DNA of 64,000 nucleotides from Calcarisporiella thermophila CBS 279.70 (taxonomy: Eukaryota > Fungi > Calcarisporiellomycota): contig NW_027192199.1 in NCBI RefSeq assembly GCF_041956535.1, positions 825,693-889,692 on the forward strand, written 5' to 3'. Positions 6,271 to 64,000 of the stretch are shown piece by piece (position 1 is the stretch's first letter; every line of letters starts with the position of its first letter). The position numbers were made by a program, and so were the translations under genes. The notes below the pieces were generated by a model. It ran no database searches and had not been told where the DNA came from. It saw nothing but the letters and a program-made list of their open reading frames with translations.

Positions 6271-6459
6271 ATGGACCCTGGTTACCAATGCCGTGTGAAT
6301 GATCGCGTCGAATGGCGCGATAATGACAACAAAAAGCATACAGGGGTAATTGTGGGTGTCGATGGAATAGGAGAGCATGCTAGCTACAAGGTATATAACG
6401 AAAGGAATCAGCAAGAGGAACAGTGCCATCATCATCAAGTAGAGCGCAAGCTTCAGTAA
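6271..6459 (+). CDS. Small 62-aa SH3/Tudor-like protein, copy 4 (Cys/His subtype)
   Basis: 52/62 aa identical to copy 3 by manual alignment, with many synonymous DNA differences. Confidence 0.85.
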   Translation: MDPGYQCRVNDRVEWRDNDNKKHTGVIVGVDGIGEHASYKVYNERNQQEEQCHHHQVERKLQ

Positions 6460-24237: not shown

Positions 24238-25126
24238 ATTGTGGTGCGATTCCTCCTAGGCTACTCTTTTGTTCGAGAGAGATATCCGGAGCGATTTATA
24301 TATAGGCATGCGTGCTCAATTTAACTAGTGGAGAGTCAAAATTGGTGTTCAACAAGTGTGTATGATTAGGATCTATGTAAATGATCGGGTAAAACTGCTA
24401 TTATTTTCTGGATATTTTCAGCAAGAATGTTGCTATTTTAACTACAATACCCGTCTTTCCATCAATGTCGGAGTGGCTGTCTAAAGTATTCGGACTTCCC
24501 AAATTGAATGTTTTTAGGGAACGCTTACCACCCGAATTTGTCAAAAAGATCTTGCTGAAGTAAGACAAGAACTGTAGCGCTTAGCCTATTCCACTCGACA
24601 TTATTTTCTTCACTTGTGATATACTTTCGTGGTTTCACGCTATCCTAATCTTGAAAGAAAATGCCATGCTATTATTAGAACTCTTAATTCTTACCCGTAG
24701 CTTGAGGCTTTGTATTCTCTTCTATTGTATAGAGAGGGTACTTATTGTCTCTAATCTGAACTCGGTGTTATCCGCTCTTTAATATTTTTTTTTTCCCACA
24801 CATTGAGCCTAACGATGTCTGAAATAACTAGAAAATTGACAGATAAAGAAATGTCCAAGGTACATCTTTCCCCCGGTGCTATATGGCTTCCATGCTAAAT
24901 AATTGGTACTAAATATATAGCATTTTAACGCATACTACTTTATTTATTAGAAGGATATTAAGATACGACCAAAAAAGAAGAATTAGTTCTTCATAGGAAA
25001 TATACCATTATCTAAACTCTAACTCGGAATTATTCATATTTCATCATCGAAACCGATTTTGGCTTTACTCTATGTATTTCCTAAGTAATGTGTTTTCAGG
25101 CTATCGTTTGCCCCAATCATCCTATA

Positions 25127-43400: not shown

Positions 43401-44913
43401 GCCAGCGCGCACAGTACATTGGGCGCCGAGCAATGGTGCAAGAGAGTTTGGTGACATCGTCATGGGCCGGTTAGTGCTTTCCCTTATCGTGTAACCCGTG
43501 GCCAAAACCTATTGCAGGCTTGACAATTCCCGATTTTCTTGCTACGGCGGTTTCCCCTCGTTTGCCCTCTGCCTCCCAGCCAATTTACCCGCAACAAACC
43601 AAGAGTGCCACGGGAAACGAGGCTAAAAGACCTGAACACCGCGTGTCCCGATCCCCTCTCCTTGCTCTTGTTTTTCCCGCGCCGGCCTCCCCCGCTCCTC
43701 ATCGACATTCGCCATCTCGATCGCGGGCCAGCATTCCCCCCCTTGCGCTCTGCTTCCGCGACTCCACACTTTGTGTTTTTATTGCTCCGCACAAACTAAG
43801 CACCGAAGCAAGACCCTTGTGAAGCCGATGAAATCCTGCGAGATAAAATAAGCGTGAAAAGCCTTTTTCCCCCTTCGTGTCCCATTTGCATCTGCCCATC
43901 TCGCCGGCATCGAGCCTTAAGGTAAGCGCTTTCTCCCCTCTCTACTGCCCCCCTCCCACACAAGAGTGGCCTGCACTCCCGCAAGCCATGCAATGCACCC
44001 TCCTGCATCTCGGCCTGATATTGCCAAACCCGGGCCAAGCACAGGGCCGTGCAGCTGTGCGTGAGACTGGAACGAAAAGAGAGCGAGGCGGAATTGGGTG
44101 CAGGCCGGCTTGGCCCCCCTCCCCCCCCCCTCCCACCTCGCCTCCCCTCTCTCCCGTCGCTCGGCCGCGAGCATTGGGCGAGGGAGGAAGCGCGACTGAG
44201 GGGAGAGAGAGAGAGAGAGAGGAGGGAGGCGAGGGCGCGGCACGGGGGCGAGTGGCGCGTCACTGTTTCTCCCGGCGTTGCCCTAAGGGAGTAATAACCT
44301 GCTTGCGTCTTGCCCTCTCTTTTCCAGTCCGATGCGCTCTAGCTCCGAAGCCTAAGTTGTTCGAGCCCGGGTTCTGGTTTGACTGGTTTCAGGCTTACAT
44401 ATCGAGCAAGATGAAAAGGAGGGTGGTTGGGAATGCAATGCACTCGACGAGGCACCTGCCAAACTCTGCCTCTTCTCTCATGGTTGTCTGTGACGTGAAA
44501 CTAACACTGCTTTCCTTTTTCTCCCCCTCCCTCCTCTCCCCTCCTCTCGTGTCGCCTATATTAATCCCATCCTTGCATGCTCGGCCCTCGTCTCGTGTCG
44601 TTGGCGTATTCGTGGGTTAAAAAAAGTTGGAGTGCTTTTTTTAGCCGTCTTTTCTTAGTCAGTCCTGCGCGTGTATTGTTAGCGAGCAGTTATTAGTGAA
44701 CGTGGTATATAGCCGTTTCTCCTTCTAATTCTTGGACCCTCTCCCCCCCCCCCCTCGCCTCTCCCCTCCCCTCCCCCCCTCGCGCCTCCGCCCTCCTCTG
44801 CCTTGCTCCTCCCCCTTTCTTCTCCCCCATTGGTAATGGCTATCGTTAACATCCCCCATCTATCCCAGAACACAGCGCCCCACTTCCCCGACAGGTATGC
44901 CCAAGCATTCACC

Positions 44914-46617
44914 ATGAGCGCCATCTCAGAGACCTACTTCGGCTACATCGACACCACGCAAGATGCACTGCTCATTTTCGAGGCCTGCCAGCGTGGCCTC
45001 CTCCCAAAGCTCAACCGCCGCCTGCAGGAGAAGGAGCGCGGCATCGTCCGCAGCGGGAGCGTTTTCGTGTTCGATGAGCGGGAATCGGGGATCAAGCGCT
45101 GGACCGACGGGCGGGTGTGGAGTCCCTCGAGAATCCTGGGTAACTTCCTCATCTACCGCGAGCTGGACAGGCGCGGCCCAAGCGGGCGGCGGGAGCTGCT
45201 CTCCTCGCCCGAGCGCTCCACCGCCTTCCCCAACGACCCCGAGACCCGCGCCGAGCGCGAAAAGGAGCGCTCGCTCGTCGGGAGCCTCACTAACTCGTAT
45301 CGCTTCAAGCGCAACGGCCTCATCAAGAAGACGCTGTCGCTGGTCGTGAACGGCGTGAGCCAGCACCTCATCTCCTACTATGCGATCGAGGAGGTCAAGA
45401 TGGGCCGCCTCCGCCGCCCAAGCAGCGTGCCCGAGCTCGCCTCCCTCGAAATCTCCCCCGTGCTCCTGCTAAAGCAGAACTTCCGCGTCCCGCCCCTCGT
45501 GGACTCGCCCGCCGGGCCGGAGGGGGCCGCGGGCGCGGGGATGTCGGGCGCGCCCGGCTTGGACCTGCACACCTACCACGGGGCCTCCGGCGGCCTGGGC
45601 GGGGCGGATTACAGCCTCTACCCGTCCATGTCGCCGCCGGCCGGCCAGCGCGAGCACGTGGGGTCCGCACGGTGGATGCCCGCGGAGCCCCCGTCGGGCT
45701 TTCTTCCGGCGGCGGGCGGCTACGGCTCTGCCTCGGGGGTGCCGGATCCCCACGCCTCGCCCCCTTCCGACCTCCTCGAGCCTCCTCCCCACCCCACCCC
45801 GCCCGGCAGCGGAGCGCTACGCTCGCGCCCCTTTGACCCCGCCGCCTACGCACCGTTTCCCCAGTCCCTTTCGGCCGCGCCCCGGCAGCAGCCGTTCTAT
45901 CCCTCTCAGCCCATCCCCATCGTCTCCGAAGCCCAGAGCCTCTCCGCCGAGGGCGGACTTCGGTTCGTCTCGCCCCAGCAATCGTCCGCGTTCTCGAGCT
46001 ACGTCCCCCAGTCGTACATGACCGCCTTGCCCTCGCAGCTGGGCTACGGCGCCGCGTCGCACCCGTCCACTCCGCGTCAACCCCCGCCCATGCAGGCACA
46101 GCCGCGTGCCTCGGCCGCACCCTCCGTCGGTGGCTACTCGCAACCCCAGCCGTCCCCTTCCTACTCCACCTCGCCGGGCACGGGATTCAGCCCCGTGGGG
46201 GCTGGTTATCAGCCCCATGGGTCTCCGCTGGTAGGAGCCGCCCAGTTGTACTCAGCGTGGCCCGAGTATCCCGCCTCCTCCGCCTCCTCCCATCCCTCGC
46301 CGGCCTCCGTCCCCTCCTCGCGGCCGGCGTCCCACTACTCCGCGCAGCCTCCACAGCGCCAGCTCCAGCCTTCCCCCGGACTCTCGCATGGAAACCCGGC
46401 CTCATACCCTTCCCCCGCTCCCCCCGTCCAGTATGACACTCGGCCCGCGCCTGCCCACCTCTACCCCTCTCACCTCGGGTCTCAGCACCCGGGACAGCAG
46501 CAACAGCAGCAGCAGCAACCCGCACAGGGGGAGCAGCAGGCACAGGGAATGTATGCCTACAACTCTGGGCAGATCCTACCCATGTACTCGTCCTCTTACC
46601 CTGAGGGCTCATCATAA
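44914..46617 (+). CDS. Gti1/Pac2 (WOPR) family transcription factor, paralogue 1; possible upstream start at 44836
   Basis: ETYFGYIDTTQDALLIFEAC, GIKRWTDGRVWSPSRILGNFLIYREL, GLIKKTLS, HLISYY, followed by a Pro/Ser/Gln-rich tail. Confidence 0.93.
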   Translation: MSAISETYFGYIDTTQDALLIFEACQRGLLPKLNRRLQEKERGIVRSGSVFVFDERESGIKRWTDGRVWSPSRILGNFLIYRELDRRGPSGRRELLSSPERSTAFPNDPETRAEREKERSLVGSLTNSYRFKRNGLIKKTLSLVVNGVSQHLISYYAIEEVKMGRLRRPSSVPELASLEISPVLLLKQNFRVPPLVDSPAGPEGAAGAGMSGAPGLDLHTYHGASGGLGGADYSLYPSMSPPAGQREHVGSARWMPAEPPSGFLPAAGGYGSASGVPDPHASPPSDLLEPPPHPTPPGSGALRSRPFDPAAYAPFPQSLSAAPRQQPFYPSQPIPIVSEAQSLSAEGGLRFVSPQQSSAFSSYVPQSYMTALPSQLGYGAASHPSTPRQPPPMQAQPRASAAPSVGGYSQPQPSPSYSTSPGTGFSPVGAGYQPHGSPLVGAAQLYSAWPEYPASSASSHPSPASVPSSRPASHYSAQPPQRQLQPSPGLSHGNPASYPSPAPPVQYDTRPAPAHLYPSHLGSQHPGQQQQQQQQPAQGEQQAQGMYAYNSGQILPMYSSSYPEGSS

Positions 46618-47553: not shown

Positions 47554-48636
47554 TTATAACTCCTCGGTTGACTCGATGGTGCTAATTCTGCGCACCACAT
47601 CGAACACGACAAAGTTCAGGGCAGCCGCCGGGGCGATCACCCACATTCTTGCCTTCATTCCGGTGAAGAAGCCGTTCACTCCCTCCTCTTGCAGGATCTT
47701 ACGCGCCATCGGCACAAGGCGCAGATCGACGCGCCCCCCACCGGGTGCTGACTTGCGCGCAGTTTGAATACGAGTTTTGATCAGATCAAACGGTGCCGAC
47801 GTGAAGACGGCGGCGAGAGAAGCTACGGAGCCGGAGGTAGCGGTGACGCCGAAATACTGCGCGTACTCCCAGGAAAACGATGGCGGGACATTGGTGATGG
47901 AGAGCGTCTTAAGGAGGTTGCCGCGGATGCCCTCGTACACGGGGAAGATGACGACAAAAGGCATCGCGGTGAGCAGGGAGACCCCGTACCCTCGAAAGAG
48001 GAAACGAAGGCCGCCCTCATCCTTAACATGGCGGACAAGTGCGGAGAAGTGAGATTTAGGCTTGGCAGGAGCAGCGGCCAATGGGGCGGCGGCCAAGAGG
48101 GATGCCGCTGTGCGAGGATGAGACGACGTGTGCATTGCGTAGGAGCTCGGTAGCGGAGGCTTCATCCCGTTCGATTTCCCCGGCATCCCGGATGAAGCTG
48201 CAGGGGAGGGCGAGAGTCCTACAGTGAGCTGCTGGGACACCACATCAAAGGGCAGCATCATGGTCAACGTTGTGAACCCAGCAATGGCTCCAGCAAACGC
48301 CCCAACTCCCATCGGATGATGCATCCATGGAGCCTTGCTTTCCTCGGGCATGGCATTGATCTTTTCTCTGATAAAGTCGTAGGTGCCAAACTGACACAGC
48401 CGTGCGAATAAGGAACCTCCAACGAAGAATGAACCCCCATCGAACAGCCCCCGTATCCCACGAGTGCGGATCCGTTGGCGAAGGAGCTGGGTGACCGTCG
48501 CTGTGGAATTCTGGGTCTGTTGCAAGATCTTCACCGTACGGAATGGATAAAGAGCTAAGATAATGGGTGCATTAAGGATGGTGCCGTAGAAATAATATCG
48601 CTTGAAATCGATATTGGAGTTGGACGGAGTGTTCAT
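47554..48636 (-). CDS. Mitochondrial carrier (SLC25) family protein, SLC25A44-like
   Basis: Three carrier repeats with Px[D/E]xx[K/R]-like motifs (YPFRTVK, LPFDVVS, APFDLIKTR) and EGGLRFLFRG / EEGVNGFFTG; intronless. Confidence 0.88.
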   Translation of the reverse strand: MNTPSNSNIDFKRYYFYGTILNAPIILALYPFRTVKILQQTQNSTATVTQLLRQRIRTRGIRGLFDGGSFFVGGSLFARLCQFGTYDFIREKINAMPEESKAPWMHHPMGVGAFAGAIAGFTTLTMMLPFDVVSQQLTVGLSPSPAASSGMPGKSNGMKPPLPSSYAMHTSSHPRTAASLLAAAPLAAAPAKPKSHFSALVRHVKDEGGLRFLFRGYGVSLLTAMPFVVIFPVYEGIRGNLLKTLSITNVPPSFSWEYAQYFGVTATSGSVASLAAVFTSAPFDLIKTRIQTARKSAPGGGRVDLRLVPMARKILQEEGVNGFFTGMKARMWVIAPAAALNFVVFDVVRRISTIESTEEL

Positions 48637-49569
48637 GATCTCTGTTCTAAAATTGGAATCTAAGCAGATGGTAGGAGGGAATCCAGCATGGATATCTTGT
48701 AAAAGTGGGAGGGCACGGCGGAGGACGGTGAGGGGTGCACAAAGTCACAGTCAAAAGATAGCTGAAAAGCAGACGAAATCGGAGAAGAGTGAGGATCTAG
48801 TGCCGGAATAATTAATTACAAATCTATATATATACTCTATGAACTTGGAGATGTGAACTGAACGGGAAGAAAATGTTTAGTAAGTGGGTGCTATCTTAGC
48901 TAGTTATCCCGCCACGTGAACAAATATTTAAAACGTATGATGAATTTCGAGTGGGAATTGGATCAGCCTACTCTGCCAAAAGTCAATGGGCAATCCTTAG
49001 AAGGACAGAGCAGTTTTGGAATCAGCCAGAAATCTTAGTAATTCTCGGTGCCTCTGAATTTGCGTTTCCAACGCATGCTCAAAGAGAAAGGGGAAAAGAA
49101 GTTGGATACATACAAATTACATAGATGATAAAAATACTGATCTTGCGGATAAAAATTTAGGCTTTTTTTTCTCTTCCCAATCTGATAACCATCACTTACT
49201 CCAAGGAGTCCCTCCTTGTCCAGTACGAAAATGACATTTTCGCTGAGTCACTCTCCGAATATTTCCATGTGGTCTTAACAGAGTTTAGGAGGCATGGTTT
49301 ATCTTGGAAGAGAGGCCAAACTTGAAAAGGGCCGAGACGGAATCGGCCTGGACCACTGAGCACACAGTTAATAGTGCTTGGTATGGGCGATGCAAATGAA
49401 AAAGCCTTTTATTAAACTCATCCCAAAATTCAGTCTATTTATGCTCAATATAACAGCAAGTAAACGCGTGAGTGACTAGGATTTGCACCTTACAGCTTGC
49501 AATCTTGGTGTTTGGTTTGGTGACAACAAAAGGGCTCTCGGCAAAAATATTGCCGATGAGCGCCGGGAA

Positions 49570-51232
49570 TTAAACCTTTACAAAAATGCTCTTGTTGACG
49601 CGTAACCTCAACACAAGAATGATAAGGGCGGCGAGCACCGACAATGCGCCCGTAAATTCCGCGAGCGGGACGAAAGTGGTACGGTTCTGAGCATCCAAGA
49701 TCAGGCCTGCAAGCGGTGGGCCCAGAAGCGAGCCGAAGGTGGTCGCGAAAAAGATGAATCCAAACACGTCGTGTAGGTGCTGAATCGGCACCAACTCGGC
49801 ACACACCACGGGGAAGAGTGAAATAAACCCTCCTAATCATCAACAAACACAAATCAGATCATCTGCATATGCCTCTCTCTTACCAGGGTGTCGAAATACC
49901 TCCAAATATGCCGTAAAGTACCACAAAGAGTATGAGGATGTTTAAGGATTTGGCCAGCGGCCACACAATCATGGTCGAAAGGCCTCCGGCAAGAGTGCAA
50001 ACCAAGAATACGTTGATCCGTCCGCTGGTGGTTCAGAGTCAGGGTGAGTCAATACATCTATACACAAACGGCGATCTGCAAATCTACTTACAGGTAGTCA
50101 GCAGACATGCCAAGGCCTATTCTTGCCAAGCTGTTAATGCCGCTCATCACTCCAATGAGGGTGGCCGCAAGCGACGCATCCACCCCAATGAACCTCGCGT
50201 ACTGCGCCAACATGAAGAACGGCGCAGCATATCCAAAAGTAATAAAGAAGCCGATGACAAACATGAGCCGTACGTTGACATTGAGGATCTCCCAATCTAA
50301 AAACTTGCGCTTCCGGTGTCCGTGCCTGTTTGCATGGGCGGCAGAATGGGTATTGGGAGGGTGCCAGTCACGAAGGACGAGCGTTGCGCAAGGCATGATT
50401 AAGTAACCGATGAACGCGAGCACCCGCAGGGACCAGGCATACCCTAGCCGCTCCAGTACTGAACGAGCGATGGGTGTTAGTACTAGTCCCCCTATCCCTC
50501 CGCCGCTCATGGAGATTCCAATGGCAAGGCCTCGCCGCTTGGAAAACCATTTCGATGGGATAGTGATGGCGGGAAAATAGGCAAGTGAAATGCCGATTCC
50601 GAAAAGTATTCCTTGAGTCAAAAACACGTGCCAAATCTAGTACCCTAATAGTCAGAAGTGGGCTCCATCATTAGCCTACCCAAGGCTTACCTGACTAGCC
50701 CAGCTGGCCAAGAGAAGAGCCGTTGGCGCGACAAACGAGCCAATCAACATTGTGGAGCGGAATCCAATTAATCGTACAAAGAGGTTCACTACCGGCCCAA
50801 GCCCAAATAAACAAGCCGTCGTGATAGAGCCGACGAAGGATATTGCCAGAGTACTGATTTGGCCTTGATATATGTGATTGAGGTAGAGCTCTTGATAAAT
50901 ACCTAGACGATATTCTGCCAAGTAAGTAGTGGAGGAGATCAGTAGAACAAGTGGAATCATTACCCCAACAAAAGACAATTCCAAATGCGTAAAAATTGCT
51001 ATGATGGGGTGTGATTGTGAGCAGGGATGATGTAGAAATAAGGAACATGAGACCTATATCCTTACGCAAAAAATGCACCCAAGACCACCACCCAGCCATA
51101 TCCACCATCGGGCGGGGAAGCAACTTGGTGACCGTTTGGCTTCTGCCCATCTGCGACTTGTTTTTCTAATGCAGCTCCATCTTGGGTAGGCATCGAATTC
51201 TCTGAAATTTCATAACCGTTTAGCTCACCCAT
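49570..51232 (-). CDS. MFS monocarboxylate-transporter-like (MCT/Mch) permease; multi-exon
   Basis: PPDGGYGWVVV, TQGILFGIG, KWFSKRRGLAIGI..SGGGIGG, GYAWSLR, SLLGPPLAG. Confidence 0.9.
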
Positions 51233-52437
51233 TTTTCAGGAGGAATTTTTCTAGAGTAGCCAACGCTTCCTCCAGTATGTAGTATGAAGCTATTGTATTA
51301 GATTTTCCTGTACTCAGTCCTTTTTATAAGTGATGCTTTTATAGAAATGGATTGCTGTTTATAGCGGCAACTCTCGAGCGACGACCGGCGACGGTAAATC
51401 TCATCTCCGTCGGATACCGGAAAGAGAGATAACCATCGGGCTGCTTTGGGTTCATTTTTTAATGTAAACTCTTCAATAGTGTCTCTTTGTTTCGCCAGCC
51501 TTAATGAATTCAGGTTTTGCGTTCGGGTCACAAACGCCTGGTGATACAAAATTAAGGTTGCCCGAAGAATATTCAGGATGCGGATCGATTAAAGACTGTC
51601 CGAGCCGTAGTTTCCGAGGTAAAAGAGCCAAAGGAAGTAACGGACATGGCCTGGTGCTGACCACTTGGGGCATTGCGCCGCTTAGACTCATTCCTCTCAC
51701 AAGAGGATGCGCCTCCGGAAGAATTATTCAACAAAGCGTGCTTACGGAAATGAAATCCAAAAATTCAAAATTCGGCACTCCAAGAAAAGAAGAGGATCCT
51801 AAACTTAGCCAAAATAGACGGTGTAATATCAGAACAAATGCTTCGTTCAAAGCCAAGTGTTTTTCCAATGGCGGGGGGCATCAGATTACAGAATAAAGCA
51901 CGGCCAAAATTGTCCCTAATACATTCAGTTTCAATCAGACTCTTAGAAAAGCTATGTAAGATTTCTCCAGTTCTGGATGGTTCGGAGTTCCAAAATATTC
52001 CAAATCAAGTAATTTAAGAAGTAAAAGATTGATAAATTTATTCTTTACAAAAAATCAAGGACTATTTATAAACTTCAGAAAATACATTCTTTACATAATA
52101 CAAGTTGGCGTTAAATGGCTAATGTAAGACTTGCGTAATATTACAAAGCTAAAACATTATCTAAGGCAAGACATTATTCTAAATATGTTCTGTAAAAATA
52201 TAAAAAATAATAGTAAAGTCAATTCATTACAAGCTATCTTCAATCCATGAACGATAATATATTAATGGGAAGAGATCTAAAAGAGTACGGCCTATATAAA
52301 TAAATATAAACCTTGTTTTTCACATCTATTTCTTCAAACCGCAATATAAATGGAAGCCTAGTTTCATTCTAAAAAAGTAGGTTTATTTAAACACGAATGG
52401 GTGATGAATATACACCAAATGCGTCAAAAGCGCGTAA

Positions 52438-53816
52438 TTAATCGAGCAGCGGGACCGCCTCGATCACGCTGTGATAAGACCTCGTTGGCACCACTTTTCG
52501 AATCTCGAATCTCGCCTCCTGCAACAACCGTCTATAATCGTCCAGCGACCTTTCGCATGCGCCCTCCCTGAAAAACACCATCATCAATACATCCATGTTG
52601 CATTGCTGGCGAAGAGGCCGCTCTTCCATCACCGTTTCAGAGAGCAATAGCACCCCACCGTCCCGCATCGACTCTCTTACTTTGCATAAAATCTGCAAAC
52701 ACTCTGCATCGGGCCAGTCGTGGAGTACATGCTTGAGGAAGTAGACGCGAGCAGGCGGTAGCTGCTCAAAGAAGTTCCCTGAGAGGTAGCTTAGATTGGG
52801 AAGAACAGGGTGGAGTTGTTTTGCTTTTTCGATAACGGCGGGAGTATCAAAGACGACGGCGGAGAGCAGGGGATAATGGGTGAGGAGAGAGCGGGTAAAT
52901 CGCCCCAGCCCGGCCCCCACGTCTATGATGGTCTCGTTTGCATATTGGTTCCAATCATAGTCTACGGGGTCAGAGCAAGTTAGCGAGCTTGTCCTTGTGG
53001 TCCAAATTCTCTGCTGAACCTACCCGCTATCACGGCTGTTTCAATCTCCGCAGTCACCGCCAACATAACTCGGTTAAATTGCTCCTTCTTCTTCGCATTA
53101 TTCGGCATGTCAAGATACTCGAACAAATCCCTGCACCCTGTGGCCAGCTCGGCGCATGTCTGGGTAGATTTTTGGTCGATAGACTCTCCCAAATACTGGG
53201 AGAACAAAAGTGGCTCTTCCAATCTATCAAAGCATTAATAAATAGAGATGTTACAACGCAAGGGTCAGCACTCACTCACCCCAAGTGAAAAGCAGTGCTC
53301 CTCGGATGATCTCGACGTAGCACATCGGATTGTAGATTATTGCGATAAACATGGCAAGACACCTCTTCGAATATCCCAAGGCCCACCAATTGGCGCATCA
53401 CCCGTCCTAAGTTCGAGAGATTAGTAACTCAGCATAGTGGACAACGGCTCTTTTCTGCTCATACCAAGTTGCGTTGCCTTGGCCCCTGCTTTTTCTGCGA
53501 GATCTTCAAGCCTCATCTCCCCATCGCCCAGCAAATCCGCCACTCCAAATTTTGCTACCACGAGAAGGGATCTAGTCTCCAAAAACTGCCTAGCTATCCG
53601 CTGTGCTCTGTCGACCGGGGTCTCGGCAATGGTCTCGAAGTGAAGCAAGAGCCGTTGGGCTTCCCGGCGAGCTTTGACCACCTCCCAGGGCTCAAGTGTC
53701 TGCCTAGGGTCGGTGGCGCGGTGGCGGTGGATTAGGAGAAGATTATCGCTGAAGGATTTGATTTGAGATTGAAGAGTGGAGTTTGCGTCCACTGAAGTCG
53801 AACTCTTCCGAACCAT
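52438..53816 (-). CDS. SAM-dependent O-methyltransferase (COMT / Methyltransf_2 type); multi-exon
   Basis: N-terminal dimerisation region (VAKFGVADLL); IIDVGAGLG, VVFDTP, GNFF, LKHVLHDWPD, ERS motifs. Confidence 0.92.
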
Positions 53817-54891
53817 TGTGGGGATTTCAAACAAGTAAAATGCCTGTGAATGGAGAAACTATTCAAGTGTCGGTAAATTACAGAGACTATCGATCCAAGA
53901 AAAGAGGCCAATTTTATAACGAAGATAGAGTTATTAACTAGGAGGCCAGAGTTAAACAATAGCTTTTTGCTGAGCTGGTTATTCGACAAATAAGCGCCAA
54001 GCTAGAGCATACCGCGTTGGATGTCATCGAGTTGCGCTTCCAGAAAAACCAATCCCAAGGATTTTCATGGCATTAAACTCTGTTTGGTCGCAAGCTTCCC
54101 ACGAGAGTCCATTCCGCCATTAAGGGTTAGTGCGCTGAGAAGGAGTCGGATACGCGGATTTAAGGGCGACTGTGGTATAACTTTATTGGGAGGAAACGGT
54201 CTATGCGTTATTCCGCCAGCTCCATGGCAATCGCTATTGTTGCTTGTCTTAAAAAAAGAATAATAATTTAGAGTTTGAGCATCCAAGCAATGCCGTCCGC
54301 CAATAGCCAAGTTTAGTTGATTAACACGAATATTTTCTAATTAATTAAGCTTAATAAATAATTTTGAGATTAAAATCCAAGTGGTTGATTACACTCTTTG
54401 ACCTACAGCCTAAAGAATTTTCTCAAGGGCAAGCGGTAACTATTGCTGCTTTAGAGTTGCCATAGGGGCAAATATTTCCAAAAATATCAAACCTAAAGAG
54501 ATGAACAAAGCGAAATTAAATTATTTGATGAAGGGTTTGAGAATAGACCGGCGCTTTCCAGTTGGATCCGAGCAGAGATGGCTCGAGGCGCGCCGTATCG
54601 GCTGGACATTTATGGAGTATTGGAACCCACTTCATCAATGAATGGGGCAAAGCCTAAACTGTCACACTTACTCTAACTTTCGGAAGAGAGAGAAGCTAGG
54701 GGCAGGGAGCGAATTTGGGCCTTCTACCAGACTATGCCCTTGTTCTGAGATCAAACCAGGGGAATGCTTACCTCAACGGTCCCCATCTGCTTCTGCGACA
54801 GGTATATAAGGCCGCCATGTTTTGAGAATGGATTATCATAAAGCAAACGAAAAACAAAATTCTATCCATCCTCCCTCACTTGAATCATAAA

Positions 54892-57663
54892 ATGACCATT
54901 GCCGACCTTGTCCCGCTTCCCACCGTGCAATTCAGCGAAGCCGGAAACCTCACACGACTCCTTCTCCGAGCAGCCAAGACACAACCAGAACATGGAATAT
55001 TCTACATCCCAGATACCGAGCATATCGACAAGCCCCTCTTTACCACCTACCCATCATTAGTCTCGACTGCAAGGGCTCTTTGTGCCTCGCTCCAGCAATT
55101 GGGACTGCAGCCAGGCGATCCAGTCGTACTCTATTTCGATCGGCACCAAGATTACATTGAGACCTTCTGGGCCTGTCTTTTTGGCGGCTTTATTCCCTGT
55201 CCCCTCGCACCTCTGAGCCCTGATCTCAATCTACGATCCAAGCATCTCGAGCATATCCACACCCTCCTCGATTCCCCAATCTTTCTCACCAGAGGAACCC
55301 TTCTACCACAGCTGGTAGCTTCAGTGAATCTCCGCACCACGCCTCTGGAGTCTCTGAGCACGACAGAAGAGACTTTGACCTTGCATATGGCTGCTCCAGC
55401 CGACATCGCCGTGCTCATGCTTACCTCAGGCTCTACTGGCAACTCCAAAGCGGTCCAGCTAACTCATGACAACCTACTAGCCAGCATGAGCGGCAAGAAT
55501 AGTTGCCATATGCTTTCCGAGAAGGATCGTATTTTCAGTTGGATCGGGTTTGATCATGTTGCCTGTGTCACGGAGGGCCACCTGAATGCTATTACCTGGT
55601 GCGCAAGCCAAATCCATGCCAGCTCCTCGGTGGTATTGGCGGATCCTCGTCATTTCTTGAAGATCATCAACAACCATCGAGTTTCGTTCACGTTTGCACC
55701 CAACTTTCTATTTGCCCAAATTGAAGCTGCACTTCAACGCCATCCAGAGGACTCCTATGATCTTTCATCTCTACGCTTGATCACCAGTGGAGGTGAAGCG
55801 ATTGTGACTGAGACTGCAAAGCGATTTCTTGGCCGGTTGAAGCGGTTCGGGATGGCTCAGGATATCATCGTCCCAGGATTCGGTATGACGGAGACATGCG
55901 CAGGAAGCATCTATAACATGCATTTTCCCGAGGTTGACCAAGGCGCTGAGTTTGCTTCCCTTGGCCGCCCCGTCAAAGGGCTGCAAATGCGCATTGTGGA
56001 CGACGATGGCAAAAAGGTGCCGGAAGACACCGTGGGCGATCTCGAGCTCAAAGGAAGGATTATATTTGCAGGATATTGGAATAACCCTAGAGCCAATGAG
56101 GAATCCTTTACTGCGGACGGGTGGTTCAGAACTGGAGACCGTGGATATATCCGGGATGGCTGTCTTTCGCTCTCCGGCCGCAAAAAGGACAGCATCATCA
56201 TCAATGGCGTCAACTACTTTAGTCATGAGCTGGAAACAATGCTCGAAGAAGTTGATGGCATCGCTCGCTCACATGTTGCAGTGTGCCCCATCCGCCTGGC
56301 CGATTACGACACCGAACAGATGGGAATATTCTTCCTCCCCACCTTCGATATCACCCACGAAGAGCCCTTGATCCGCACGTGCACTGACATTCGTGACAAA
56401 GCTGTCCTGTATTGCGGAGTCAAGCCTCAAGTTATTCTCCCCCTCTCAAAGGATCTCATGAACAAGTCCAGCCTGGGCAAGCTCTCCCGTTCGCGTCTCC
56501 GGAATCAATTTGAAACAGGCCAATTCGTGCACATTCAGAAAGAGGTGGAGGCCATCTTTGCCAAAGCAAAGCACCGCGATTACCAGGCCCCCGAGACCCT
56601 GGTAGAGAAGACACTGGCCGAACTTTACTCCCAGATATTTAACATCCCTTTGGAAGAAATCGGTGCAAACACTAACTTTTTTGACTTGGGAGCTAGCTCG
56701 CTTCATGTGGTGCGCTACAAGGCAAAGGTGATGACCACCCTCCAACTTGATGACTTTCCGATCATCTGGATCATGCAATATCCCACCATCCGCGAGCTTG
56801 CCGCCAAGCTTGACAAAAGAGATGCGCTCACGGAGTACGACCCCGTCGTCCCGCTACAGAAGACCGGCAAAAAAACACCCATTTTCTTTGTCCATCCCGG
56901 GGTCGGCGAGGTTCTCATTTTCGTAAATCTGGCTAAGTACTTCGTCAACGAGAGACCGTTCTATGCCCTTCGGGCCCGCGGGTTCAACTCCAACGAGAGG
57001 TACTTCCAGTCGTTTGAGGAAATGGTGGAGTCGTATACGCGTGCGATTCGCAGAACCCAACCCAAAGGGCCGTATGCTGTTGCAGGCTACTCGTACGGAG
57101 GGGTGGTGGCCTTTGAGATTGCCAAGCAGCTCGAAGCCGAAGGAGAGGAGGTCAAGTTTGTAGGCGCAGTGAATATCCCCCCGCACATTAAACAACGCAT
57201 GGACCAGTTGGACTGGACGGAGGGCTTCTTGAACCTCGCGTATTTCCTCGACTTGCTGAGCAAGGAGCGTGCTCGTGAGCTCTCGCCTTATCTACACACC
57301 CTAACCAGAGAAGAGCAACTGAAATATATCTGGAGCATCGCGCCCCCCGCCCGCATCCAAGAGCTCGACCTTGATCTCAACAGGCTCGAGGACTGGGTGG
57401 ATCTGGCTCAATCACTGTTGAATGCGGGTCGCTTTTACGAGCCGAGCGGTAAAGTGGATCGGCTCACCGTCTTCTATGCCGTGCCCCTCTTCGGTACTAA
57501 ACAAGAGTGGTTGGAGAGGCAACTTAAGCCGTGGGATCAGTTTTCTCGCCGTGCCAACCGATATATTGACGTTCCTGGAGAGCATTATACCCTGATGGAC
57601 ATCCACCACGTTGCTCAGTTTCAAAAAATATTCCGCAATGAGCTTGCAAGGAGTGGGCTTTGA
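54892..57663 (+). CDS. NRPS-like enzyme A-T-TE (atromentin/TdiA-type aryl-alpha-keto-acid dimerising synthetase)
   Basis: A domain LTSGSTGNSK, FDHVA, GFGMTETCAG, WFRTGD, GRKKD, KSSLGKL; T domain FFDLGASSL; TE domain HPGVGE, GYSYGG, NIPPHI, GEHYT; no C domain; intronless. Confidence 0.93.
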   Translation: MTIADLVPLPTVQFSEAGNLTRLLLRAAKTQPEHGIFYIPDTEHIDKPLFTTYPSLVSTARALCASLQQLGLQPGDPVVLYFDRHQDYIETFWACLFGGFIPCPLAPLSPDLNLRSKHLEHIHTLLDSPIFLTRGTLLPQLVASVNLRTTPLESLSTTEETLTLHMAAPADIAVLMLTSGSTGNSKAVQLTHDNLLASMSGKNSCHMLSEKDRIFSWIGFDHVACVTEGHLNAITWCASQIHASSSVVLADPRHFLKIINNHRVSFTFAPNFLFAQIEAALQRHPEDSYDLSSLRLITSGGEAIVTETAKRFLGRLKRFGMAQDIIVPGFGMTETCAGSIYNMHFPEVDQGAEFASLGRPVKGLQMRIVDDDGKKVPEDTVGDLELKGRIIFAGYWNNPRANEESFTADGWFRTGDRGYIRDGCLSLSGRKKDSIIINGVNYFSHELETMLEEVDGIARSHVAVCPIRLADYDTEQMGIFFLPTFDITHEEPLIRTCTDIRDKAVLYCGVKPQVILPLSKDLMNKSSLGKLSRSRLRNQFETGQFVHIQKEVEAIFAKAKHRDYQAPETLVEKTLAELYSQIFNIPLEEIGANTNFFDLGASSLHVVRYKAKVMTTLQLDDFPIIWIMQYPTIRELAAKLDKRDALTEYDPVVPLQKTGKKTPIFFVHPGVGEVLIFVNLAKYFVNERPFYALRARGFNSNERYFQSFEEMVESYTRAIRRTQPKGPYAVAGYSYGGVVAFEIAKQLEAEGEEVKFVGAVNIPPHIKQRMDQLDWTEGFLNLAYFLDLLSKERARELSPYLHTLTREEQLKYIWSIAPPARIQELDLDLNRLEDWVDLAQSLLNAGRFYEPSGKVDRLTVFYAVPLFGTKQEWLERQLKPWDQFSRRANRYIDVPGEHYTLMDIHHVAQFQKIFRNELARSGL

Positions 57664-58646
57664 TTTTTTTTTATATATATATATTCTCTTTGTATTTCAT
57701 TCGTATTGTTTTTTTAAAAAAAATTGATGTTTTTTGATTCATTTTTGTTTGATTTATTGTTATGCCTGTATTTATTTGAAAACCTTGATATTATACATCA
57801 GCTCTATGTGGCGACTTTTGTTATTAATGCATTATGTTATCTTTCGTTTTCATAAAATCTTGGTGAGGGTTGAACTTTATTTTCAGGAAAAAGAAGGTGG
57901 CAATAATACGAATAACATGAAAATCGTGAATAATCCAACGACAAATAAAAAAAATACTCAATCTCTTCCTTTTCTATTGAATGATAAAATAGAAATATTT
58001 TAGAGGTAATCGTATTTTGAATTTTCTTATGACGAGAGAATATTCATTTCAATAACATCAAAATCTTTAACGTAAACTCAATAATTAATATGCATTAACG
58101 CAAATGCTAATTCCCAAATATGTTTAGCATCGACCAAGGAGTTGACTAGGGAAACCAGTGGCTCGAGCACGAATATTTTACTCAATTTTGATAAATCTAT
58201 CCAAAAGTCGAGAGGAATGTCTATTTTTATTCTTTATGAAAAGGTTCACTAAGGGAGAGACGAAGACCATTTTAAGTGGCCGGCCTAAATTTTAAGCATT
58301 TGGCTATCTTCTCTCTCTCAAAAGTTTACAGCCAATTTATTAATTCGCAACGTGATATAAAGGGAGACGATATTGGAAGGGCCAAGAGAACAATCGTATC
58401 ATATAGAAAATCAAGCCTCAATTTATCGCGCAGTTGAATGAAAAATCCCTGACGATTCACTAGGTCTGTATCAAGGTAATAGAATCGAAAACCATCTAAA
58501 GAATTCAATCAAGGAAAGCCATCCTACAATTTTGTATCGACGTGGTATTGGCGTTTTAGCGACTTCTCTCATAGCCCATTCCCACCCATCCGTGTCACCT
58601 CCATCACAAATCAAGAGGCTCAGCATCGGACCCTAAATCAGAACGA

Positions 58647-59144
58647 TTAGTCGTCCGTCACGCGCTTGCAACCATCATACGGTATATACTTATAAACCGC
58701 ATATTTTGGCAGTGTTTTGTCCAATTTCATCATGTTCTTCACCTGCTCAACGCCATTGTCCCAATAGATGTGTTGTCTCATTCTGATTTTGTCTGGATCG
58801 TCCAAGCTCCCCACGGTTATCCCGCGCCAACCTTGATCCTCGTCGGACAGCACGAACAATTGGGTCCCACACTCGGGGCAGAATCCCCGCCTGGTGTCCG
58901 CTGAACTCTGGTAGAACTTAGCTTTGTTTTCGACAGGCGTGAGGAACACGAGATGTTTTTCGGCCAGCCAGAAGTAGCTTGGGAGCATCGCGCCAGTGGA
59001 TTTACGGCATTGAGTGCAATGGCAGATGTTCACGAATGATGATGAAGCCGTGCTGAAGTCATGCGGCAACTTGGCACGGTAGCGGATATGGCCACAAAGG
59101 CAGCTGCCCTCGACAGTAAAGTTTTCACAAGGGCCCGAGTTCAT
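58647..59144 (-). CDS. GFA/CENP-V family zinc protein, copy 1
   Basis: GSCLCG, CHCTQCRK and RGFCPECGTQL zinc-ligand motifs; HIYW. Confidence 0.9.
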   Translation of the reverse strand: MNSGPCENFTVEGSCLCGHIRYRAKLPHDFSTASSSFVNICHCTQCRKSTGAMLPSYFWLAEKHLVFLTPVENKAKFYQSSADTRRGFCPECGTQLFVLSDEDQGWRGITVGSLDDPDKIRMRQHIYWDNGVEQVKNMMKLDKTLPKYAVYKYIPYDGCKRVTDD

Positions 59145-59747
59145 CGTCTTAGACTATACCTGACCAAGCCTTGCAGCAGGCGGGAAAGTTCATTATTTAA
59201 AGCGTGTTGAATTTCAGCCTCATCCCGGTTTTTGGTCTTCATATCTGGTGGAGTGCCCCTAGATTAGGAAATAACGAGGCCACGCCACCCTGGCACAATA
59301 GAAAAGGCAGAAGCTCTGACCTAAGCACCAAAGAGCTCTGGAGTTTGTAAGCAATAAGAAAAGAACAGACTTCGATCCATTGGATCTTTATTCGGTTACA
59401 AACGGTGACGATCTTCTTTTTGAACTCCGTGTACAAAAACAACACAGCAAAGTAATACGTGGGATTCAAATCCAAATAAAGCGGTTACTACTGTAAAATT
59501 GTGTATACAAGATCGAAGGCATATATATTTAAGATGAATATTCTTAAACCTCTCGGATTGGTGAAATGTAAAATGAAATTGATGGAATCCGCTGTATATT
59601 TATTGTCCGTTGTCGAAGGATTAAATTAGGCATAAGCCCATGCCAAACTGCACTTTTCTAAGTTCATAAATCGAGAGGTGGCTCATTGGAAACTTGATGC
59701 AGATATAAAAAGTGAGTTTAAAATCCATTTACATCACACGTGAACGA

Positions 59748-60197
59748 CTACTTACACTCGGCATACTTTGGCATCTGCTTGTCCAGAATGAGCAACTCCT
59801 TCATCGACTCAATGCCATGGTTCCAAAAAATATGCTGGCCGGGCTTGAGCCGGTTTGGGTCATCCAGGCTGCCAAGGGTGACCCCACAATGGGCTTCGTC
59901 ATGGCCTGAAAACATGAAGAGTTGGGTTCCACACTCAGGGCAGAAACCACGCTGCGTCCCGGGTGAACTCTCGTAGTGTTTTGGTTTGTTTTCTTCCGGG
60001 GAGAGGAAGGCAAGATTCTCTCGGGGGAACCAGAAATAGCTGGCAAGCAGTGCGCCAGTAGCTCTGCGGCACAAGGAGCAGTGGCAGATAGGGGTGTAAG
60101 CTCCTCCGATATCCTTGGATAGTGTGGCACGGTACCGAATGCGTCCACAGAGGCACCCGCCATCAACCGTGAATTCGCTCGAGGGGTTTGAACTCAT
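59748..60197 (-). CDS. GFA/CENP-V family zinc protein, copy 2; probably a short extra 3' exon ending near 59664
   Basis: GGCLCG, CHCSLCRR, RGFCPECGTQL, HIFW; GTAAGT donor at the ORF end. Confidence 0.9.
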   Translation of the reverse strand: MSSNPSSEFTVDGGCLCGRIRYRATLSKDIGGAYTPICHCSLCRRATGALLASYFWFPRENLAFLSPEENKPKHYESSPGTQRGFCPECGTQLFMFSGHDEAHCGVTLGSLDDPNRLKPGQHIFWNHGIESMKELLILDKQMPKYAECK

Positions 60198-60756
60198 AGT
60201 TCTCTGATATTGTCGAAAAACGAGAGTATGTGGAGCGGCAGGGTGGAACCATGCTGCCGACTGCTGAGCCATTTTATCATCTCCAAATGGATGAGTCAAC
60301 TTGACGATGCCCGGTACCCAATCAAACAGAAGACACGAAGTCGACTAGGAGGCGTCCAATTTTTCTAACTTTTTCTCCCCGCCATGATGCACGTAGCATT
60401 CTTTTCGGCCTATTGCAGTTGCTGAGAGGAAGCTTTTTTATACAATTGATGCTAGTCCAGAAAAGTTGGATTGCGGGCAGTGGCTCGGGGGAGAGACTTG
60501 GCCGGATTCTCACTAGACATGCTAAGGATTGCTATGAGATGTGGCTTAGTTGACATACAAGGAAAATGGAATAGTTGGCGACCATTTCGTGCATACATTA
60601 GGTGGGAATTAATGGAGGCCTCCTTGCATATGGATGCTCCCAAATTGATATATATGGAGCAAGACTCGCCCATCCGCCAAATATCAAATCAAGAAAACCC
60701 TATTCCCATTCCTGCATTCTCCTCCTCTGCTTAATCCATTTTTTCCTTTAGAAGGT

Positions 60757-61284
60757 ATGGCGGACAGCTCGAAAGATAACCACGACCATGCCCTAGAACT
60801 CGAGGGCGGATGCCTCTGTAAACGCATACGCTACCGCGTGTCGCTTCCCGTTTCCTACAACGAATGCGACCCCACCCCGGCCACCTACTGCCACTGCTCT
60901 GTGTGCCGTAAATCCACGGGGGCATTGCTCCCGGCTCTGACGACGGTCCCCGTCTCTGCGTTTACATTCCTCACCCCCCATCGCCCCAAATATTACTCCT
61001 CCTCCCCTGAAGTGTATCGAGGGTTCTGCGAGGAGTGCGGCAGCCAAATATACATGTGGGAGAGGGAGAAAGACGGCGCCAACTACGGGGTGTATGTAGG
61101 TGGGTTCGATGATCCCGACCGCATTCGGGTCGGGAGGCATATCTTCTGGGATTCCGGGGTGGAGCAGGTCAAGGAAGTGTTTGCTCTGGATCCATCTAGA
61201 GCCAAGTGGCGCGAAGGTATGGTAGAAATCGTCGAGGATTGGGTTGCGGGCATAGGTTGCTCACCTTGTTTATTATTTTTATGA
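60757..61284 (+). CDS. GFA/CENP-V family zinc protein, copy 3; 3' end probably spliced
   Basis: GGCLCK, CHCSVCRK, RGFCEECGSQI, HIFW; GTATGG donor near 61217. Confidence 0.9.
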   Translation: MADSSKDNHDHALELEGGCLCKRIRYRVSLPVSYNECDPTPATYCHCSVCRKSTGALLPALTTVPVSAFTFLTPHRPKYYSSSPEVYRGFCEECGSQIYMWEREKDGANYGVYVGGFDDPDRIRVGRHIFWDSGVEQVKEVFALDPSRAKWREGMVEIVEDWVAGIGCSPCLLFL

Positions 61285-61757: not shown

Positions 61758-62166
61758 TCAGGTGGAATAGGGGGTGTTATAGACGGTTGCCGGGGGCGAG
61801 TAGTAGTATTCGCCAGGGGGTCGGGGGGGTTGCTGCAGCGGAGGAGCCGGCGCAGATAGGGCAGGCTGCTGCGGCGGCATGGGTAAGGAGTAGGAGAGCG
61901 GCTGCCTCGAATACTGGTGCGAGAATTCAGGTTGCGGGGGAGGGCGGTAGGCGTGGGGGGCGGCGGAGGGGTCTGCCAAGGCGGGCGCGTATACGGCCTG
62001 GGGGGAGGGGAAGTCGGCCGCGGTGGCTGCGAGGTCGGCGGCCGGCGGCTGGTATTGGACGGGGAGGGCAGGGGAGTAGCGGACGCCCGTGCCGGGGGGG
62101 AAGGTGGCCACGGTGGGGGAGTAGGAGGCGCGGCGCGGCACGATCGAGACAGCATCCGCCTGCGGA

Positions 62167-62199
<33 letters not shown>

Positions 62200-63029
62200 A
62201 CGTAGTATGGGTCTCGGCCAGGGGCGGGCACGAAGGAGGGGCTGACGCCCGAGGTTGCGGGGGCGAGGTCGCCCTGGACGAACGACGAGGCGGCGGGGAA
62301 ATGGCACCATAAGTCTGGGGCCTGCGGGGGCAGAGGCTCGTGGCCATGCTGGGGCTCGCGGTCGTAAGGGGGCGCGTAGCGGGCGTGGGGCGGCGGCGGC
62401 GGGGGGTGGTGGTCGTGGTAGGTCGGGCTCGGGTAGGCGTCGGAGGGGGGCACCCGGAAGTTTTGCTTCTGGGTGAGCTCGGGCGAGATGTCAAGGGCGG
62501 CCAGCTCGGGCACCGACGATGGGGTCCGGAGGCGCCCGGAGATGACGTCCTCCACGGCGTAGTAGCTGACGAGATGCTGGTTGACGCCGCCCACCACTAC
62601 CGACATCGTCTTCTTGATCAGGCCATTCTTTTTGAATCGGAATGCATTCGTCAGGCTGCCGATCAGGGCCCTCTCGCGCTCCCGCTCGGCGCGCACGGGC
62701 TCTGGGTAGGAGCCGGTCGAGGCACGCCGCTCCGAGTCGGAGAACGAGTCTTTCTTGTTGCCGGGGCCCCTCTTGTCGAGCTCGCGGTAGATCAGGAAGT
62801 TGCCCAGGATCCGGGATGGGCTCCACACGCGGCCATCGGTCCATCGCTTGATTCCCGACTCTCGCTCGTCGAAAACAAAGACGGTGCCCGAGCGGATCAG
62901 GCTGCGCTCCTTTTCCTGGAGACGCCGGGTCACACGCGGGAGGAGATTGCGCTGGCATGCCTCGAAGATCAGAAGCATGTCCTGGGTGGTTTCGATGAAG
63001 CCGAAGAATGTTTCTGTGACGGCGCTCAT
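61758..63029 (-). CDS. Gti1/Pac2 (WOPR) family transcription factor, paralogue 2
   Basis: MSAVTETFFGFIETTQDMLLIFEAC, GIKRWTDGRVWSPSRILGNFLIYREL, GLIKKTMS, HLVSYY; Pro-rich tail with polyQ. Confidence 0.93.
62169..62198 (-). repeat. (CAG)10 microsatellite encoding polyQ in WOPR paralogue 2
   Basis: Uninterrupted ctg run on the + strand; Q10 in the translation. Confidence 0.9.
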
Positions 63030-64000
63030 GGTGGGCTCGTCGCTGGCTGGGGATGGGGCTTGAGTTGCAGGCGGGGGTGGGGGCGGGGGCGGCAACAATC
63101 AATCTATAGGCAGAAGAGGATGAGAGCTGATTAGAGCGCTGCAATGCCAGACGAGAGAGAGCTGGGATGGGGAGGGGCTGGAGGCTCCCTAGGGAGGAAT
63201 CCGCCCGACAGGTTTTTCTCCTCCTCCAACCTGCTCGCGGTGCTTGGCTTCCCTCTCCCCTCCTTCTCTCCCTCCCGAGCGAGCCCAGCACGGCGGGCCA
63301 AACTCACCTTCAGACCGGGAGGATGGCGGCCGCAGCAATCCGCAGTGAGAGCGCGCTGATGATGGCGGGGGGGAAGCTTGCTGAGAAACCTTGTCTGGCT
63401 CCAGGAGCTTAAAGCCAAGAGCGGGAGCAGAGGCGCGAGAGGGGGAAAATAAAAATAAAGGCGATTTCAAGCTGAGCGCCAAAATTTATACACTATGCAA
63501 CACATGTACAAAGGGTTTGCCCGCCTCACGGCTCCCCTCGCCCTTCCTCGGGATAGCGCAACCATGGGAAAGATTCGCACAGAGCAAATCGATCACATCG
63601 TTACACGCCAGTCACGGATTTTTTTTTTTTTTTGCTTTTGTACCTGGTAATCCCACCTCTCCGTGTCGGCGTGGGACAACTCGCACCGGCCCTGCCTCCA
63701 TTGGGGTGTGCCGGCCCATCCGCAGCCCGGCTCCGAGCCCCCCACACCTCCCCAGCCGCAGGCCCATTGGCCCAGCCCTGGGCCAACGACCCGTGGGCCG
63801 CTTCGAAAGAACGGTTCGCAGAACAAATCTCGCCTGCTTCACGAGCAGTCACGGCCGATGCAGTCACGCCTCATCGTCCGGCCAACCGCGCGCGGCGGGG
63901 ATTGGAAGGCGGAGAGTTAAGTTTCTGTCAAAGAGGAAAGCTTATCCCGCCCGCTGTATACTTATATACCCGCCTCAGGGGCCGCTGCTCGGCATGGACA

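Follow-up and report, generated by a model that had tools for sequence, protein, structure and literature searches.

Secondary metabolism is generally considered meagre in early-diverging fungi. A 64,000-nucleotide stretch of the Calcarisporiella thermophila CBS 279.70 genome (contig NW_027192199.1, positions 825,693 to 889,692 of assembly GCF_041956535.1; hereafter the window) raises the question of whether such a fungus carries a pathway to methylated aryl quinones and, if so, which of the genes at the locus belong to it. An original prediction, made from the sequence alone, proposed a gene set built around a nonribosomal peptide synthetase (NRPS)-like gene of the adenylation–thiolation–thioesterase (A-T-TE) type, with a divergent O-methyltransferase (OMT) gene, two transporter genes, and three GFA genes, and read it as an O-methylated terphenylquinone-like pathway. 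We find that the synthetase is a functional-looking and probably old member of its family and that the locus represents a known pathway type, an arylpyruvate-dimerizing synthetase that probably has the OMT as its partner, in an unusual host phylum and with a rare pocket residue. The assignment of the host to an early-diverging fungus is secure, as an 859-aa RPB2 exon on contig C13 of the 28.2 Mb, 116-contig assembly is 100% identical along its full length to RPB2 of C. thermophila, which NCBI places in the phylum Calcarisporiellomycota; the second-best match is to Jimgerdemannia (87%).

Synthetase Domains and Substrate Pocket

Based on Pfam, the synthetase (P0001) comprises AMP-binding (E 3e-55), PP-binding (3e-9), and Thioesterase (1e-29) domains in that order, the adenylation match spanning about 55030–56079, the carrier about 56611–56805, and the thioesterase about 56878–57609, with the catalytic lysine of the adenylation domain (Lys530) lying beyond the adenylation match. 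Members of the A-T-TE family have a single module in this order and about 900–1000 aa, as does this protein with its 923 aa. The solved structures nearest to the adenylation–carrier part are the McyG adenylation–peptidyl carrier protein didomain (A-PCP; 4r0m) and the pair 6ulw/6ulx, deposited only as "amino acid adenylation domain-containing protein"; 6ulw is an adenylation domain that selects keto acids.

When aligned with 17 family members, the synthetase shows a valine, Val223, at position 1 of the specificity code within the motif GFDHVACVTE (V223-A224...E228), where it replaces the amino-acid-binding aspartate. Valine at this position is a mark of alpha-keto-acid activation (PMC10316625), and the corresponding DHV[AGS] motif is found in 181 of 207 relatives. 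The further family motifs TFAPNF, ITSGGE, GFGMTETCAGS, and SLGKL are conserved in the same alignment, as are the catalytic residues K530 (in SLGKL), Ser603 of the carrier (LGASSL), and Ser734 and His898 of the thioesterase (GYSYGG and GEHYTL); the catalytic aspartate was not located in it. These features portray an intact, functional-looking enzyme, and together with the phylogeny described below they bear out the placement of the core gene in the aryl-alpha-keto-acid-dimerizing A-T-TE family. Among the relatives, the Suillus ampliporus "atromentin synthetase" (P0157) has GDNRTL in place of GEHYTL, and hence no thioesterase histidine, as well as AEFGMTE in the adenylation core, and may be an inactive or divergent paralogue.

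Code position 5, the residue directly before SGGE (Ile298 in CorA, Val302 in PpaA1, and Asn323 in NPS3), is used as a substrate predictor, isoleucine or valine indicating phenylpyruvate and asparagine 4-hydroxyphenylpyruvate (PMC10316625). The Calcarisporiella enzyme has neither, carrying Thr298 instead. Isoleucine (98) and valine (62) occupy this position in most of 193 relatives, with threonine in four and asparagine in three, the latter being the Basidiobolus and two Geranomyces proteins. With this rare threonine, position 5 points to neither of the two keto acids.

Phylogeny and Origin of the Synthetase

Full-length A-T-TE homologues number in the thousands. The 119 best non-self matches from a word-based search are 47–52% identical to the synthetase; those with names are bacterial (Hyalangium, Streptomyces, Burkholderia pseudomallei, and others) except for one Basidiobolus ranarum protein, and many more are unnamed metagenome proteins. 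A profile search run exhaustively on representatives at 50% identity, for 20 of which source names were obtained, placed the chytrids Geranomyces michiganensis and Geranomyces variabilis among the A-T-TE relatives together with Basidiobolus, and also recovered members from Dikarya (Suillus, annotated as atromentin synthetase; Claviceps; Colletotrichum, annotated as "microperfuranone synthase"; and Aspergillus alliaceus) and from the transcriptomes of the protist Dracoamoeba and the diatom Stephanopyxis. These transcriptome sequences, labeled Dracoamoeba jomungandri and Stephanopyxis turris in the MMETSP collection (P0148, P0169/P0308), are full-length and 39–46% identical, and are either protist genes or contaminants.

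A tree of 41 sequences and 942 columns was inferred with IQ-TREE under LG+C20 with posterior mean site frequencies and rooted on adenylation–carrier loading modules of larger synthetases. The synthetase falls inside the A-T-TE ingroup, apart from the loading-module outgroup (support 100). All fungal sequences (Basidiobolus, Geranomyces, Suillus, the ascomycetes, and Calcarisporiella) form one clade with a Shimodaira–Hasegawa approximate likelihood ratio (SH-aLRT) support of 95, rising to 98 without a long-branched second copy from C. thermophila. The sister group of the fungal clade is a bacterial clade (SH-aLRT 99), and the protist sequences branch outside both. The synthetase evolves slowly, its end branch being short (0.49), and the bacterial proteins are equally slow, which accounts for its high identity to them.

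A recent origin by transfer out of one of the sampled bacterial lineages, as the list of best matches had suggested, is ruled out by the approximately unbiased (AU) test, which rejects nesting of the synthetase with its top bacterial matches (Hyalangium, P0009) by a log-likelihood difference of 92 (p-AU 0.0004). The gene also has a TATATAA box at 54803–54809, approximately 85 nt upstream of its ATG, and this box and a GC content like that of the neighboring genes argue for a resident gene. We therefore favor, on these sequence comparisons, ancient residence of the synthetase in the fungal lineage of the A-T-TE family and disfavor recent import from bacteria.

The second A-T-TE gene of C. thermophila (P0152) lies on contig C27 (C27:15521–18465, minus strand) and is 41–43% identical to the window synthetase, considering local matches and the whole alignment. 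It has one short intron, a tyrosine at code position 5, and a long branch in the tree. Its neighbors encode an isochorismatase, a PEBP protein, and an unrelated major facilitator superfamily (MFS) protein. The C27 contig contains stretches of N, and absences reported here for this locus refer to its readable parts. Elsewhere in the genome, a multimodular NRPS region at C30:28486–50094 contains several large open reading frames, the longest of 3619 aa, in which adenylation and carrier matches recur.

The Divergent O-Methyltransferase

The OMT, a class-I small-molecule methyltransferase, has a Dimerisation domain in its first exon and a Methyltransf_2 domain (6e-30) in its last, where the catalytic histidine is retained in LKHVLHDW. 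The best solved relative of this last exon is MmcR, a mitomycin O-methyltransferase that acts on a hydroxyquinone, and an isoflavone OMT is also among the best. A six-frame scan of the 28 Mb genome turned up no PF00891 gene but this one, and the probability of its falling by chance within 5 kb of one of the two A-T-TE genes is below 0.001. In Hyalangium and Burkholderia, relatives of the synthetase likewise have an adjacent OMT with the same Dimerisation and Methyltransf_2 domains, and the fungal alf cluster pairs its A-T-TE enzyme, AlfA, with an OMT acting after it (PMC12105029).

A link between OMT and synthetase is credible because the gene is the only one of its family in the genome and because the same pairing recurs in bacterial relatives; on this genomic evidence we consider a functional tie between the two likely. 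Co-inheritance of the two genes is unsupported, because the OMT is only 28–32% identical to the bacterial partner OMTs by tblastn.

Locus Layout and Neighboring Genes

All of the predicted genes, namely the A-T-TE synthetase, OMT, MFS, SLC25, and three GFA genes, are present at the positions first proposed for them and belong to the families named, each with Pfam matches well over the curated cut-offs (table 1). For the OMT and MFS genes, each exon was searched separately, and the block boundaries are approximate. The description of the synthetase as intronless is correct, its reading frame being uninterrupted throughout, and the divergent spacing of about 1.1 kb proves to be 1075 bp from ATG (53816) to ATG (54892).

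Table 1. Features of the Calcarisporiella thermophila A-T-TE locus, in window coordinates
Feature	Position	Strand	Basis and remarks
Left WOPR (Gti1/Pac2) regulator gene	44803–46617	+	Pfam; single open reading frame in GC-rich island; left border of gene set
SLC25 mitochondrial-carrier gene, 360 aa (P0121)	47554–48636	-	Pfam Mito_carr 4.5e-39; intronless
MCT (SLC16)-type MFS transporter gene	about 49570–51232	-	Pfam MFS_1; ~five exons
MFS coding blocks, approximate	51232–~51062, 50984–50676, 50627–50088, 50005–49880, 49809–49570	-	
OMT gene (PF00891 plus dimerization domain)	52438–53816	-	Pfam; ~four exons
OMT coding blocks, approximate	53816–~53440, ~53401–53276, ~53222–52980, 52920–52438	-	
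Divergent intergenic region between OMT and synthetase	53817–54891	.	1075 bp
A-T-TE NRPS-like synthetase gene, 923 aa from first ATG (P0001)	54892–57663 (reading frame opens 54880)	+	Pfam; intronless
GFA1 (GFA/CENP-V family), 165 aa	58647–59144	-	Pfam; zinc-binding cysteines present
GFA2, 183-aa reading frame	59748–60299	-	Pfam; true start probably further in
GFA3, 175 aa	60757–61284	+	Pfam; convergent with right WOPR gene
Right WOPR (Gti1/Pac2) regulator gene	61758–63098	-	Pfam; single open reading frame; right border of gene set

The gene set is flanked by two GC-rich islands (64% GC) that carry the WOPR genes. Open reading frames from 31.5 kb to the end of the window and over a further 10 kb of contig include no aminotransferase, reductase, cytochrome P450, or other tailoring enzyme, and the interval between the two WOPR genes, like the 10 kb that follow on the right, lacks a cluster-type Zn2Cys6 regulator. 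The Wor1-type site TTAAAGTTT is absent from the whole window, and the promoter words common to the candidate genes are A-rich strings only. Further upstream, the window encodes a CSL/LAG1-type DNA-binding protein (19356–20747, plus strand), a Fungal_trans transcription factor fragment (16658–17674, minus strand), and a beta-lactamase-family protein (25088–25975, plus strand), with no evident tie to the locus.

The label "MCT-type" suits the MFS transporter, as its largest exon, the one tested, has MCT10, MCT2, and MCT8 as best solved relatives (1e-12 to 6e-8). The SLC25 protein has clear relatives only in Endogone, Mortierella, and Linnemannia (31–35% identity), making it a lineage-restricted orphan carrier. 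No MFS protein similar to the one in the window is found at the paralogous C27 locus, and a synteny check recovered neither transporter there or at the Geranomyces and Basidiobolus loci, so that the proposed membership of SLC25 and MFS in the pathway finds no support; the SLC25 gene is probably a bystander. A mitochondrial carrier located approximately 5 kb from the Geranomyces synthetase was considered as a conserved SLC25 and discarded, as it is not orthologous (tblastn E above 0.1), and we treat its position as coincidence.

The three GFA proteins match PF04828 with E values of 1e-19 to 7.5e-25, have 8ajq as their best match in the PDB, and all retain the zinc ligands C15, C17, C41, C43, C46, C89, and C92 in CxC, CHCxxC, and CxxC motifs. 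GFA2 is 56% identical to GFA1, and the locus holds three of the approximately six GFA genes of the genome. The two window WOPR genes bracket the locus as an inverted repeat (44910–45495 and 62445–63033), with 72% identity between their WOPR domains and 71–77% between their DNA sequences, and lie in the GC-rich islands with long C/CT-rich tracts (44109–44797). At least six full-length WOPR genes are present in the genome, an unusually large set. One of these occurs on contig C23 in another convergent WOPR–GFA pair (WOPR 4970–6400, plus strand; GFA 6929–7399, minus strand; positions within C23:103000–112999), in which the GFA protein is 48% identical to GFA3 and the WOPR protein 74% identical to the left window copy and 69–74% across both.

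The claim that the GFA genes are pathway members is doubtful because of this recurrence, which indicates that at least GFA3 goes with its WOPR gene. The arrangement suggests that an old segmental duplication, with tandem duplication after it, may have tied the GFA genes to the WOPR genes rather than to the synthetase. Such WOPR-linked duplication explains them better than pathway membership, and they are probably bystanders. In Candida parapsilosis, a GFA gene is induced along with the rest of the gentisate cluster, and its product has been proposed to be a glutathione-dependent isomerase (PMC8929692). By pure analogy, thiol-dependent action of a GFA protein on an electrophilic quinone is conceivable.

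Predicted Product and Alternative Readings

In the scheme that we infer for the product class, the methylation step, and the roles of the accessory genes (MFS, SLC25, and GFA), the adenylation domain would follow the family mechanism, activating an aromatic alpha-keto acid (arylpyruvate) and loading it onto the carrier serine, and the thioesterase would hold one unit and condense it with a second to give a symmetrical bis-aryl core. The most likely core is a 2,5-dihydroxy-3,6-diaryl-benzoquinone of the polyporic acid or atromentin type, on which the OMT would most likely methylate one or both quinone hydroxyls to form a betulinan-like ether, and the MCT-type transporter may serve for export of the product or uptake of an aromatic acid. 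We give this reading, an A-T-TE enzyme making an aryl-quinone core that is methylated by the OMT, a somewhat better than even chance.

Of the domains of the synthetase, the thioesterase is conserved best. Its identity is 60–66% with the homologues from B. pseudomallei, Hyalangium, Streptomyces, Basidiobolus, and Geranomyces, 53% with the annotated atromentin synthetase of Suillus, and 37–41% with the proteins of A. alliaceus and of Colletotrichum, the latter annotated as a microperfuranone (furanone-type) synthase. The B. pseudomallei A-T-TE gene is followed by genes for an epimerase-type reductase, a SnoaL-type protein, and an OMT, an order matching the logic of the ech/dat clusters for polyporic acid-derived terphenyls (PMC9379647). 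Similarity of the thioesterases indirectly favors a quinone core. The proposal of an O-methylated terphenylquinone-like pathway thus stands in part: methylation is plausible given the sole PF00891 gene lying divergent from the synthetase and the A-T-TE and OMT pairs of bacteria, and terphenylquinone as the core is favored by the thioesterase in this indirect way only.

Several observations weigh against the methylated-quinone reading. Sequence cannot discriminate among quinone, furanone, butyrolactone, and dioxolanone cores for this synthetase; its pocket has Thr298 where a predictive residue would be expected; the OMT is distant from the bacterial partner OMTs; the open reading frames surveyed on and beyond the window include neither the reductase/dehydratase (EchB/AlfC type) nor the aminotransferase of terphenyl and atromentin clusters; no window accessory gene is found at the C27 paralogue locus or at the Geranomyces or Basidiobolus loci; and constraining the synthetase to be sister to the bacterial sequences as a whole lowers the log-likelihood by 18 units and is not rejected (AU p 0.21). 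The synthetase could be real and its core a furanone, butyrolactone, or dioxolanone, as made by RalA, MicA, and aspulvinone synthases, with the OMT acting on that core or on nothing related. One A-T-TE layout yields quinones and all of these cores, with the thioesterase determining the outcome (PMC9047271), there is no sequence rule by which to predict the core, and the pocket threonine sets the enzyme apart from textbook polyporic acid and atromentin synthetases. The thioesterase itself points away from such a core, with its identity highest (60–66%) to enzymes of terphenyl-type operons and of the chytrid and Basidiobolus clade, intermediate to the basidiomycete "atromentin synthetase," and lowest to ascomycete proteins that include the annotated furanone synthase, and we regard a nonquinone product as unlikely. 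We judge it about equally unlikely that there is no multigene cluster, the A-T-TE gene working alone or being silent and the OMT, MFS, SLC25, and GFA genes being unrelated neighbors in a segment shaped by WOPR/GFA duplication. The accessory genes are conserved at no related locus, the convergent WOPR–GFA pair is a duplicated unit that also occurs on C23, the SLC25 protein is an orphan carrier, the genes have no common promoter motif, and a cluster-type transcription factor is absent from the region between the WOPR genes; against this, the synthetase and the genome's only PF00891 OMT have a divergent promoter of 1 kb in common, the same pairing is seen in bacterial relatives and in the alf cluster (PMC12105029), and half of the approximately six GFA genes of the genome are gathered here.

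Slightly less probable than either is that the synthetase, perhaps with the OMT, was acquired horizontally from bacteria and that its placement in the fungal clade is an artefact. The named best matches, at 48–52% identity, are bacterial bar the one Basidiobolus protein, the gene has no introns, the family is patchy among early-diverging fungi (Calcarisporiella, Basidiobolus, and Geranomyces only), the clusters nearest to the OMT exon by language model are bacterial (a lead only), transfer of NRPS genes into Basidiobolus has been published and proposed for many of them (PMC7466969), and the sister-to-bacteria position passes the AU test. The maximum-likelihood tree nevertheless shows fungal monophyly (SH-aLRT 95–98), the AU test rejects nesting with the top bacterial matches, the bacterial identity is accounted for by short branches, GC content and promoter look native, and the SLC25, GFA, and WOPR neighbors are equally intronless, so that missing introns are not diagnostic. 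Least probable, in our estimation, is a reading in which arylpyruvate-dimerizing A-T-TE synthetases are ancestral in fungi, predating Dikarya and surviving patchily in Calcarisporiellomycota, Basidiobolus, and chytrids, the threonine-pocket enzyme of Calcarisporiella uses an unusual aryl keto acid, three thiol-chemistry GFA proteins further process or detoxify its methylated quinone, the SLC25 and MCT transporters carry precursors, and WOPR proteins exert control; if true, it would represent an unprecedented cluster architecture. The methylated-quinone reading, centered on the synthetase and the OMT, remains the one we prefer.

Comparison with Known Systems

The paper library searched contained no report of an aryl-quinone synthetase from early-diverging fungi, and quinone synthetases of the A-T-TE kind are not among the topics of a survey of secondary metabolism in zygomycetes (PMC7466969). 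The grouping of the Calcarisporiella, Basidiobolus, and chytrid enzymes in one clade with those of Dikarya suggests that the A-T-TE family in fungi is older than Dikarya. The case also cautions against inferring horizontal transfer from best BLAST matches alone. With its thermophile origin and unusual pocket residue, the synthetase may serve as a robust catalyst for bis-aryl quinones.

The combination of an A-T-TE enzyme with an OMT is already known from the alf, ech/dat, and BTH-II0204-207 clusters (PMC12105029, PMC9379647). The bacterial EchA/DatA of Streptomyces and the enzyme of Burkholderia BTH-II0204-207 have the same A-T-TE layout and all of the motifs described above, and overall identity to the B. 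pseudomallei, Streptomyces, and Hyalangium homologues is approximately 50%. The Burkholderia and Hyalangium loci resemble that of Calcarisporiella in their adjacent Dimerisation plus Methyltransf_2 OMT. In contrast to ech/dat and BTH-II0204-207, the Calcarisporiella locus has no EchB-like reductase/dehydratase or EchC/SnoaL-like gene, and terferol-type reduction to a p-terphenyl is therefore not encoded there. Compared with the bacterial polyporic acid synthetases, the enzyme has threonine rather than valine or isoleucine at position 5, is encoded in a eukaryotic host by a gene with its own TATA promoter, and lies outside the bacterial clade.

The quinone synthetases of Dikarya, that is AtrA, InvA, GreA, and NPS3 for atromentin, CorA, HapA, PpaA1, and AlfA for polyporic acid, and TdiA, belong to the same family and the same fungal clade and share the valine at position 1, and the alf cluster has an A-T-TE gene plus an OMT as at the Calcarisporiella locus (PMC12105029). 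Overall identity to these enzymes is only 37–41%, position 5 is neither asparagine nor isoleucine/valine, the host phylum is Calcarisporiellomycota, and the clustered aminotransferase of atromentin loci and the dehydrogenase and dioxygenase of alf have no counterpart.

Each of the two Geranomyces A-T-TE genes is divergent from a P450 gene, genes for a multicopper oxidase and for the unrelated mitochondrial carrier are near both, and a BAHD-type transferase and an MFS gene are seen only at the G. michiganensis locus; these loci may represent an atromentin-type cluster in Chytridiomycota. Unlike the Calcarisporiella gene, the Basidiobolus and Geranomyces genes have introns and asparagine, the 4-hydroxyphenylpyruvate signature, at position 5. 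The proteins of B. ranarum (K7432_012544; 51% identity) and of G. michiganensis and G. variabilis (HDU86_008409 and HDU88_007836; 47%) are nonetheless the closest eukaryotic relatives of the synthetase, with 61–67% identity in the thioesterase, and form a clade (SH-aLRT 99) beside it within the fungal clade.

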